64,000 nucleotides of DNA, from NCBI GenBank assembly GCA_051530055.1, contig CM121341.1, positions 13,680,784-13,744,783 of the forward strand, in the 5' to 3' direction. The DNA comes from Neoechinorhynchus agilis (Eukaryota; Animalia; Acanthocephala). The notes under the pieces were generated by a model, which ran no database searches, was not told where the DNA came from, and was given only the letters and a program-made list of their open reading frames with translations. The first letter of the stretch is position 1. Every line of letters starts with the position of its first letter. Positions 38,754 through 40,837 of the stretch are shown in pieces. A program made the translations under genes and the position numbers.

Positions 38754-40837
38754 ATGTGTGATCCAGAACAGCATATTAAACGCCTCATAGAAGAGCACGG
38801 CTTCGAAATAGATGATCCACGTGTGGCTGAGGTACTAGACGATCAAAACAAGGACGTTAATGAATTCAGAAAACGATTCCTCGTTCCTCATGTCCGTGAC
38901 CTTCCAGGTGATCGTTCTAGAAAAGCGTTTTCCCTATAACTCAGATCTGATTTTTATTTAGTCGAGATTGAATTACCGCCGGAACAAGAAATCGTGTACT
39001 TTTCGGGACAATCACTGGGTCTTCAACCGCGAGAAGTGATGGAAAATATCAGAGATGAATTAAATAAATGGGCAACGATGTAAGTGATTGAATATACAAA
39101 ATTTACTCGACAAAAAAACATCGGCACATGTGGGTCGGTGATTTGAAACTAAGGGCTGAATTAGTTTTAGAACTTGAGTATGTTAAAATGCAAAATGTAC
39201 TAGAGTTGCAACTGTAGGGTGAAATTAGTCAAAATTTAAAATGAAAGCTTTGAATAAAAAATTGTATCTAATAATATAGGGGAGCATTAGCTCATTCGGT
39301 TCCAAGCGAGCCGTTTAACGCCTGCGACAAAGTACCAATACCCCTCATGGCTTCGATGGTTGGAGCATTGGAATCTGAAGTTGTTCTTATGAACACCCTA
39401 ACAGCTAATCTTCACATAATGCTGGTTGGTCTTCTACTCATTTTCGATTTTGGACAGTTTCGAAATAGGAATTCTTTTATGAGCCCAAAGAAGAGAAAAA
39501 CAAAATCATTTACGAGGAACACATTTTCCCTTCTGACAAGGTATACTCGCTTTGTTTTATTTTCCGAATTCCAGCCAATCGCCGTACAGTACGCGATTGA
39601 TTCGGTTTGCCGGAACCATGGATTAGATCCAAATAATGTTTGTTTGTGCGTCAACACTTCTCAGGTTGCATCATATATTTTTTGTTTAATCTCATTCAAC
39701 TGAAAACAGCCGCTAAAATCAATTCTCGAATTCATTGACCATCACGGCCATGAAACGGCTTTGATATTGATTGGAAACGTTCAGTTTTATACAGGCGCAA
39801 ATGTCGACATTCGGGAAATAACCGAATGTGGTCATCGACATGATGCGATCGTTGGCTTTGATTTAGCCCATGCTGTACTCACAGCGATTCTTAAGGATTG
39901 CGCTTCTAAAATAGAATCGTTTGTTTCTAGGCAATGTTGCATTGAACTTACACGAAGATGACGTTGATTTTGCGGTTTGGTGTACTTACAAGGTATTGAA
40001 GTTTCTTCAGTCCGTATTTGTATTTCGGTCCTTAGTATTTGTCAGGTGGCCCAAGCAGTGCAGGTGGAATGTTCATCCATGAACGACACTTCAATCGAGA
40101 AGGCAACCGACTGGATGGATGGTGGGGAGCAACGATGAACTCTAGATTTGACACTAAACCTGGTATGAGATTTTGTTGTCTTAAAGAGTGAAAAAACCAA
40201 TTCAGCAATTGAGCGCGAGTACGGAGCTGCTGGTTTCAGAATGAGTCATCCATGCCCTTTCCAGACAAAACCGTTGCATACCTCTTTGAAGGTGAGTTGA
40301 GCCCAAAGGTGTACTTGAACGCTATTGATTTGTAAGTTATTTTCGAATTTTATCCCTTGAGAAATAAAGCAAACGAAGCCTTCATAAACAAAGAGTATCT
40401 TGTGTACTTTAATTATAATTTAGATCTTCGAAGAAGCAGGATTCGAAAAGTTGTACTCCAAAGGCAGGCTGATGTCACAATACCTTCTTATGTTGCTAGA
40501 AAAAAATGTCAAAGGTAAATCGTTCCTAGGAAATTATCTGAAATATTCGGTCATAAAAACAAGGAGTGGAAATCATAACTCCGTTGGACTCAAAGTTGCG
40601 TGGAGCGCAAATTTCGTTTCGTCCACCAGAGCCATTTGGTGTTGCGGAAATCAAATCAGAGTTGTATAGGCGAGCAATTATCGTAAGCATATATTGATAG
40701 ATCTCGAAAATATTACCAAATCAATATAGGTTGATGGTCGTGGAGATGTGGTTCGAGTTGCTCCTGTTCACGTTTATAACACTTTTGAAGAAGTGTTTAG
40801 ATTTGTCAAGGCCCTCAAAGACATAACGAATTGTTAG
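38754..40837 (+). CDS. KYNU: Kynureninase, 12 exons (10 GT-AG introns, 1 non-canonical)
   Basis: [44 protein letters not shown] (PLP lysine), RVAPVHVYNTFEEV. GT-AG introns 38908-38961, 39080-39279, 39425-39468, 39541-39589, 39665-39709, 39993-40035, 40163-40205, 40292-40423, 40515-40563, 40683-40729. Confidence 0.96.

Follow-up and report, generated by a model that had tools for sequence, protein, structure and literature searches.

The kynureninase gene KYNU of the acanthocephalan Neoechinorhynchus agilis lies within a 64-kb stretch of contig CM121341.1 (assembly GCA_051530055.1), hereafter the window, whose first letter is position 1 of all coordinates given below. In its sixth junction, KYNU carries a short insert inside the valine codon of the conserved D-L-A-H-A-V-G-N motif, and the motif is restored only by removal of exactly 52 nt at borders that are not GT-AG. 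Our best single guess, a tentative hypothesis drawn from the sequence and falling somewhat short of probable, is that these 52 nt are removed exactly at the RNA level. The features on which this reading turns are the following:

38754..40837, plus strand: KYNU (kynureninase) gene, 12 exons, encoding 441 aa with 52 nt removed and 445 aa as annotated
39710..39876, plus strand: exon 6, ending in ...GFDLAHAV (GCT GT), phase 2 if the removal is exact
39876..39929, plus strand: insert with both TA flanks (TA at 39876-77, 50-nt core at 39878-39927, TA at 39928-29)
39929..39992, plus strand: exon 7 if the removal is exact, A GGC AAT GTT ... TAC AAG, with the Schiff-base lysine motif WCTYK
39875..39914, plus strand: alternative 40-nt GT-AG intron, in frame, replacing Val by NRLFL (four additional residues), the choice of the public annotation
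39875..39930, plus strand: alternative 56-nt GT-AG intron, shifting the frame, with a stop four codons past the junction

The upstream exon reads ...GGC TTT GAT TTA GCC CAT GCT GT(A) and the downstream exon (A) GGC AAT GTT, such that removal of the core together with one TA (52 nt) yields GCT GTA GGC, or A V G, and rebuilds DLAHAVGNV. Because TA stands on both sides of the insert, three placements of the 52 nt are equivalent (39876-39927, TA..TC; 39877-39928, AC..CT; 39878-39929, CT..TA), and at none of them does the segment have the GT (or GC) start and AG end of a U2-type spliceosomal intron. A first-pass annotation of the sequence had claimed that DLAHAVGNV needs a 52-nt removal, in agreement with both our reading-frame check and an alignment of the resulting product with human kynureninase (3E9K, residues 218-315), which runs ungapped over 98 residues through the pyridoxal phosphate (PLP)-site residues Asp250, His253, and Lys276. 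Its statement that GT39875 and AG39930 enclose 56 nt and lose the frame was likewise reproduced, the product reading ...DLAHAAMLH* with the stop four codons on; if the insert is left in, the next in-frame stop lies 27 codons downstream. By contrast, the 56-nt pair is not the sole GT-AG alternative, as had been assumed: GT39875-AG39914 (40 nt) is in frame and annotated, and its product DLAHA-NRLFL-GNV is identical to the public BRAKER protein (P0001). The 40-nt option matters because the earlier logic took every GT-AG choice to break the frame. Each outcome predicts its own sequence, namely GCCCATGCTGTAGGCAATGTTGC (k-mer CCCATGCTGTAGGCAATGTTGCA) for the 52-nt removal, CATGCT|AATCGTTTG (CATGCT|AATCGT; k-mer CCCATGCTAATCGTTTGTTTCTAGG) for the 40-nt intron, CATGCT|GCAATG (k-mer CCCATGCTGCAATGTTGCATTG) for the 56-nt intron, k-mer CATGCTGTACTCACAGCG for the unspliced insert, and GCTGTAGGC for the empty site.

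The gene model was rebuilt by hand from the window sequence. Its proposed identity as a kynureninase is borne out by homologues and by the TIGR01814 kynureninase equivalog profile, which scores the 52-nt product at 328.6 bits and the annotated protein at 318.1 bits, a difference of 10.5 bits. Apart from the sixth junction, KYNU comprises a full open reading frame (ORF) without other damage, and the ten remaining introns are all GT-AG in the hand-built model, as the first-pass annotation had it, with lengths of 43-54, 132, and 200 nt. The best protein match (99% identity) is the 445-aa N. agilis “hypothetical protein ACOME3_003227” (P0001), encoded on the same contig, with window position 38754 corresponding to position 10001 of locus L004. 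The closest relative, P0002 (UniParc UPI00079F90CF), shares 63% identity and the motif DLAHAVGNV, compared with only 41% identity for Pomphorhynchus laevis; P0002 probably derives from a close relative and would help in dating the insertion. The 46-Mb genome was assembled with MaSuRCA from Illumina and R9.4 Nanopore reads, using about 50 pooled worms and single females, at a k-mer completeness of 96.35%, and annotated by repeat masking followed by BRAKER 2.1.5 with mRNA-seq hints from 74 worms (PMC12690905). Introns are not discussed in that paper, and kynureninase has no entry in one of its supplements. Public RNA data of N. agilis include 74 mRNA-seq libraries (PRJNA1223661) and a Trinity assembly (Zenodo 10.5281/zenodo.17199078).

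The spacing of the motif was analyzed in 240 homologues from bacteria to vertebrates. In every motif-bearing sequence but one, two residues separate the His from the Gly of D-x-A-H-x-x-G-N (229 clean regular-expression matches, plus six pattern-flagged sequences read as DLAHGxGN by inspection). The sole exception among the approximately 236 motif-bearing homologues is the annotated N. agilis protein, with six residues at this position. An AlphaFold model of the annotated protein has a mean predicted local distance difference test score (pLDDT) of 89.9, which falls to 62 for residues 241-250, flanked by blocks of 97 and 94, making the NRLFL loop the weakest 10-residue block. The model shows the extra residues as an unmodelled bulge beside the active site, a predicted feature that does not imply a dead enzyme.

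Neither in P. laevis (L001 15463-15567) nor in the bdelloid Rotaria sordida (L002 2075-2185) is the orthologous exon interrupted at the insert site. Because of this continuity, the 52 nt is, as judged from the sequence comparison, a lineage-specific insertion into a once-continuous exon and not an old intron, placed at the TA of a GTAG tetranucleotide. Canonical use of the flanking GT and AG deletes four host bases, because these dinucleotides are host bases beside the duplicated TA. The next intron, after TYK|Y, is common to N. agilis, P. laevis, and Rotaria. Intron turnover is also apparent nearby: an intron at ..GH(N/E)(H/Q)|G.., which precedes the insert by 11 codons and is present in both P. 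laevis and Rotaria, has been lost in N. agilis (window 39840-39850 versus L001 15416-15463 and L002 about 2000-2075). Sliding of this ancestral intron to the position of the insert was rejected, as 33 nt of coding sequence would need to switch exons.

A second insert was found in SMC4, encoded on the plus strand at about 32710-36860, where two features are relevant:

34661..34807, plus strand: hinge-exon insert, with an ATAAA direct repeat (34661-65 and 34803-07) around a 137-nt element
34686..34809, plus strand: alternative 124-nt GT-AG intron, in frame, adding six residues (QQFSSD), with a donor of 6.5 and an acceptor of 2.1 bits

The element displays a perfect 8-bp inverted repeat (TCAGCAAT at 34666-73 and ATTGCTGA at 34794-801) within 1 nt of its ends, and the 5-nt ATAAA direct repeat has a probability of p~0.006. 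The P. laevis SMC4 exon is continuous at this site. Going by this architecture, the SMC4 insert is a textbook footprint of a small DNA transposon in a coding exon. From the ...LDYIV strand to the A-x-x-C-I helix, exactly six residues are found in 137/137 diverse SMC4 homologues; N. agilis SMC4 reaches six only with 142 nt removed (predicted junction ACCATAAAAGAAGCTAATCGG), and no GT-AG, GC-AG, or AT-AC pair gives this spacing. The in-frame canonical pairs all result in other spacings, the best of them being GT34686-AG34809 (predicted 124-nt junction AGCGATGAAGCTAATCGG). The public annotation breaks SMC4 inside the hinge domain, yielding proteins of 646 and 689 aa. SMC4 is a condensin subunit and essential. 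The SMC4 case shows that the KYNU insertion is not a one-off, although it leaves exact removal versus cryptic splicing undecided because an in-frame GT-AG pair is again present. The sequence CAGCRATT...AATYGCTG, tried as the mark of a single family of miniature inverted-repeat transposable elements (MITEs) in both inserts, showed no convincing enrichment and no further pairs, and was set aside as a coincidence.

A third irregular junction lies in NAPRT (minus strand, about 27941-26225), where an in-frame TAG separates two exons (window 27110-27175). The sole in-frame GT-AG pair there encloses 36 nt and has weak sites, and the strong donors GTGAAT and GTTAGT are one base out of frame. In the annotation, upstream ORFs (28846-30275) are joined to NAPRT in a 678-aa product whose NAPRTase Pfam matches are confined to the N-terminal part. 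Either the assembly is wrong by 1 nt here or the junction is a further non-canonical one; we dropped it as a third case, since the loop in which it sits is variable and a 40- or 46-nt GT-AG intron with strong donors, combined with a 1-nt homopolymer error, fits equally well. NAPRT (Preiss-Handler salvage, 26225-27941) and KYNU (de novo pathway) are two genes of nicotinamide adenine dinucleotide (NAD) biosynthesis, separated by about 11 kb in which SMC4 lies.

The comparisons above show that a short stretch of foreign DNA (50 bp, together with a duplicated TA) entered the GTA valine codon of the invariant KYNU motif in the Neoechinorhynchus lineage, within a previously uninterrupted exon. We propose that it would now act as a newly gained non-canonical intervening sequence. 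Exactly 52 nt would be cut from the pre-mRNA at non-GT-AG junctions, a step that we infer, resulting in the native enzyme. The insert must be dealt with in some way because KYNU is otherwise intact. Exact removal is supported because the KYNU and SMC4 inserts both occupy sites at which homologues never vary in length, in genes that are otherwise intact, and because in architecture they resemble non-canonical introns of transposon origin known from Amoebophrya, euglenids, and Fritillaria (PMC7789003, PMC11282704). More doubtfully, N. agilis, and perhaps acanthocephalans more widely, might harbor a minority class of exactly removed, transposon-derived, non-GT-AG inserts in conserved exons; the same reserve applies to the features by which such a class might be recognized, namely short flanking direct repeats and paired ends in the absence of GT-AG.

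A number of observations weigh against exact removal. Part of them concern the inverted repeat of the KYNU insert, which comprises:

39881..39891, plus strand: left arm of an imperfect subterminal inverted repeat (ACAGCGATTCT)
39913..39924, plus strand: right arm (AGAATCGTTTGT), the pairing of which with the left arm has a one-base bulge

Within these arms, AGCGATTCT (39883-91) pairs with AGAATCGTT (39913-21) through eight Watson-Crick pairs and one G-U, and the repeat as a whole is imperfect, 9-11 bp long, and situated 3-5 nt inside the insert ends. The pairing to which the first-pass annotation had drawn attention is therefore present, but it is not statistically distinctive: the fold of 39866-39940 (-15.3 kcal/mol) is not unusual compared with dinucleotide shuffles (z = -0.33), and with 95 inverted repeats of at least 9 nt within 60 nt in the window, the KYNU pairing is at chance level. 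In the predicted fold, both junctions are located in a symmetric 9x9 internal loop, with the intron stem (39883-91/39913-21) on one side and a weak helix between the exons on the other. The TA flank is also within chance, a slide of at least 2 nt being obtained in 17.5% of random 52-nt deletions (p~0.18); most canonical introns examined in the window have a junction ambiguity of 1-4 nt. Exact, mismatch, and short-word BLAST searches revealed no second copy of the insert in the window, and no RNA-derived N. agilis protein was present in the collections searched with full-length and 101-aa junction queries. Literature searches turned up no non-canonical introns for Acanthocephala or rotifers, and there is no known case of precise non-GT-AG splicing in Spiralia. 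The break in the SMC4 annotation may come from repeat masking ahead of BRAKER (PMC12690905). Finally, an in-frame GT-AG alternative with acceptable signals and length exists in KYNU and was taken by the RNA-seq-guided annotation.

In this alternative, which we consider rather unlikely, splicing at cryptic sites would join donor 39875 (host G plus duplicated T) to the acceptor AG at 39913-14, taking out 40 nt and leaving 12 nt that put NRLFL in place of Val. It is in frame, equals P0001 as obtained by BRAKER with mRNA-seq hints, and calls for no new machinery, following the classical route on which an exonic insertion turns into a new intron and leaves a short stretch of additional peptide. Moreover, KYNU and SMC4 (donor 6.5 bits) both offer an in-frame GT-AG pair, as cryptic splicing requires, whereas under exact removal this would be a coincidence. 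To judge the signals, 19 hand-curated canonical introns from conserved genes of the window (KYNU 10, NDRG 7, SMC4 1, NAPRT 1) served as reference, with leave-one-out position weight matrix (PWM) scores ranging from 1.2 to 8.9 bits for donors and from -3.8 to 6.6 bits for acceptors. This set was used instead of a Viterbi gene finder, whose output hinged on the penalties; bridging of ORFs by codon log-odds gave too much noise, with GT..AG pairs no commoner than control dinucleotide pairs. The cryptic donor 39875 (gct|GTACTC) scores 2.3 bits, at the low end but within range, and the donors GTACAC and GTACCA are used by NDRG introns. Acceptor 39914 is among the best in the set (6.4 bits), with 39930 reaching 4.8 bits. 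The short introns of the reference set (n=16) measure 41-58 nt, a range that includes 52 and 56 nt and lies just above 40 nt; a 41-nt intron is in use in NDRG, and AGs that would give introns of 34 and 37 nt are skipped in KYNU introns 4 and 1, respectively. On these sequence criteria, the 40-nt option appears to lie at the lower length limit, neither favored nor excluded by signals and length.

Against the 40-nt intron stands above all its product, with an indel two residues past the PLP-site His that is unmatched in about 235 other motif-bearing homologues. It would also be the shortest of 20 introns, and the competing acceptor 39930, at a typical intron length, gives a frameshift. As for its agreement with the public protein, AUGUSTUS permits only GT-AG-type introns with a minimum near 39 nt, and under this rule it would pick the 40-nt model whether reads supported it or not. 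The annotation carries little weight in either direction because AUGUSTUS could join the hint-supported gene halves only by the 40-nt model.

We deem it improbable that the assembly captured a recent loss-of-function or polymorphic allele, in which 56-nt splicing or retention of the insert would lead to a premature stop and decay, with KYNU being lost or a single haplotype having been assembled. The DNA was obtained from pooled worms and single females, and 44.7% of metazoan BUSCOs are missing in this lineage (PMC12690905). The 56-nt GT-AG pair has a typical length and a good acceptor, and NAD can also be supplied via the neighboring NAPRT. However, the rest of KYNU is undamaged, so the event would have to be very recent, and the similar insert resides in the essential gene SMC4, which cannot be null.

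Very improbable is excision at the DNA level, by which the insert, bounded by TA, would be eliminated from somatic nuclei and kept only in germline-rich DNA, like the internal eliminated sequences of ciliates. Both the KYNU and the SMC4 insert can be placed so that TA stands at each end, and they are unique, short, and within coding sequence, and the sequenced females were probably germline-rich, given general acanthocephalan biology. Yet the ends TACTCA and TAGAAA do not match the TAYAG consensus of such sequences, and the TA flank is within chance. Programmed DNA elimination is not known from Acanthocephala. An artefact of the hybrid Illumina/Nanopore MaSuRCA assembly is scarcely credible: R9.4 reads, a k-mer completeness of 96.35%, and the possible 1-nt homopolymer error in nearby NAPRT speak for it, but a unique 52-nt insertion is no known error type and a motif-restoring GT-AG intron needs a 4-nt change rather than a homopolymer slip.

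Other mechanisms were rejected on sequence. U12-type AT-AC introns start with 5' ATATCC(T) and have a branch site TCCTTAAC 8-21 nt from the 3' end; ATATCC is absent at any placement, and the only branch-like motif (TTCTTAAGG) is located about 30 nt from the 3' end. Introns of the IRE1/XBP1-HAC1 type are cleaved in the 7-nt loops of twin stem-loops with the consensus CNG|CNGN, as opposed to the KYNU junctions GCUG|UACU and UUUC|UAGG, which are predicted to lie in a 9x9 internal loop and not in hairpin loops. Translational bypass, as in T4 gene 60 and mitochondrial byp elements, relies on a landing codon that matches the take-off codon and on a stop directly behind the latter; here, take-off would be at GTA and landing at CTA, and the first in-frame stop comes 27 codons further on. 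GC-AG donors were likewise excluded.

Known non-canonical introns resemble the N. agilis inserts to different degrees. Those of Amoebophrya have 3-5 nt direct repeats over their boundaries and 8-20 nt inverted repeats by which the two ends pair, and a MITE-like origin was proposed (Farhat et al. 2021, PMC7789003). Like these introner elements, the N. agilis inserts have no GT-AG borders and occupy lineage-specific positions, with a close fit for SMC4 and a loose one for KYNU (2-nt repeat, 9-11 bp subterminal inverted repeat). Unlike in Amoebophrya, where RNA-seq confirms them and they account for >60% of introns, such candidates make up at most two or three of about 22 junctions in N. agilis, an animal, and no repeated family is seen within the 64 kb. 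A metazoan precedent for non-canonical MITE-derived introns is offered by the N introns of the tunicate Fritillaria borealis (Henriet et al. 2019; review, PMC11282704; also PMC13326754), which are species-specific, have no GT-AG, and are excised by the major spliceosome in a modified form. Most introns of Fritillaria are non-canonical with a preference for AG-AC/AG-AT ends, whereas 19/19 other N. agilis introns examined are GT-AG and the KYNU candidate ends (TA..TC, AC..CT, or CT..TA) fit no known class. Nonconventional introns of euglenids possess junction repeats resembling target-site duplications and near-end pairing by which the junctions are brought together, typically with CAG/CTG a few bases inside (PMC11282704). 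Non-canonical borders are common to both systems, and both N. agilis inserts have CAGC a few bases from the 5' end; euglenids are, however, unrelated protists whose introns are defined by stable structure, whereas the KYNU fold is no better than shuffled sequence.

Introners of Micromonas and Aureococcus, like other canonical introns generated by transposons, consist of an element plus one target-site copy, and coding sequence is restored on splicing (PMC11282704). Here as well, a DNA element inserted into an exon and its removal would restore coding; in those algae, however, GT/AG is positioned exactly at the boundaries, whereas in KYNU the GT and AG lie one base outside on each side and their use costs four host bases. 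For Tc1 in Caenorhabditis elegans and Ds/dSpm in maize, cryptic GT-AG sites remove most of an exonic insertion and leave small in-frame changes behind. This equals the 40-nt model of KYNU, with the difference that the former are mutant alleles with imprecise and usually partial rescue and not the wild type of a conserved gene.

The remainder of the window contains further genes and repeats. A ROR-like receptor tyrosine kinase gene (Fz, Kringle, and kinase domains) is located at 6189-9335 (minus strand), NDRG at 18794-20410 (plus strand), and cofilin at 1212-1688 (minus strand). An exact look-up of one long ORF of the window returned no gene with such a product on record. Long hairpin MITE-like elements with arms of up to 41 nt and 93% complementarity are present at 47095-47194, 57742-57805, 42560-42667, and 62287-62354, two of which share the core TGGGCACACAGCTCACCGATCTG; the hairpin at 62287-62354 has perfect 15-nt arms and is positioned between two ORF fragments of a retroelement integrase. 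A segmental duplication links about 45076-46340 with about 55700-56950 at an offset of about 10.6 kb, with paired ORFs (44825-45250 and 55463-55876) and identical motif pairs, and the palindrome at 45076-95 recurs at 703-722. Decayed retroelements were identified at 48386-52327 (minus strand; integrase core, reverse transcriptase (RT)-RNase H, and Exo_endo_phos endonuclease) and at 58000-63454 (plus strand; RT-RNase H, integrase zinc domain, and a weak GIY-YIG ORF, possibly Penelope-like). A GC-rich stretch at 50-52 kb displays strong GC skew (0.39).

Introns arising from exonic insertions, canonical or not, are of a known kind; the new part would be the host, a spiralian parasite. If the 40-nt intron is the one used, KYNU would provide a clean, datable case of an intron gained through an insertion that left a peptide scar in an active-site motif. 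The public annotation of this window divides SMC4 between two proteins, truncates NAPRT, and gives KYNU a spurious-looking insertion. Should a class of exactly removed inserts exist, BRAKER/AUGUSTUS and BUSCO would mis-model or split the affected genes, and figures for acanthocephalan gene loss would be inflated, in part as artefacts of GT-AG-only models. Such a class would be the first in Spiralia and would make acanthocephalans the second animal lineage after appendicularian tunicates. If the 52-nt removal in KYNU and the 142-nt removal in SMC4 are real, a non-tunicate animal would tolerate insertions into coding sequence via non-GT-AG splicing, which would bear on the birth of introns from mobile DNA and on the flexibility of the spliceosome.

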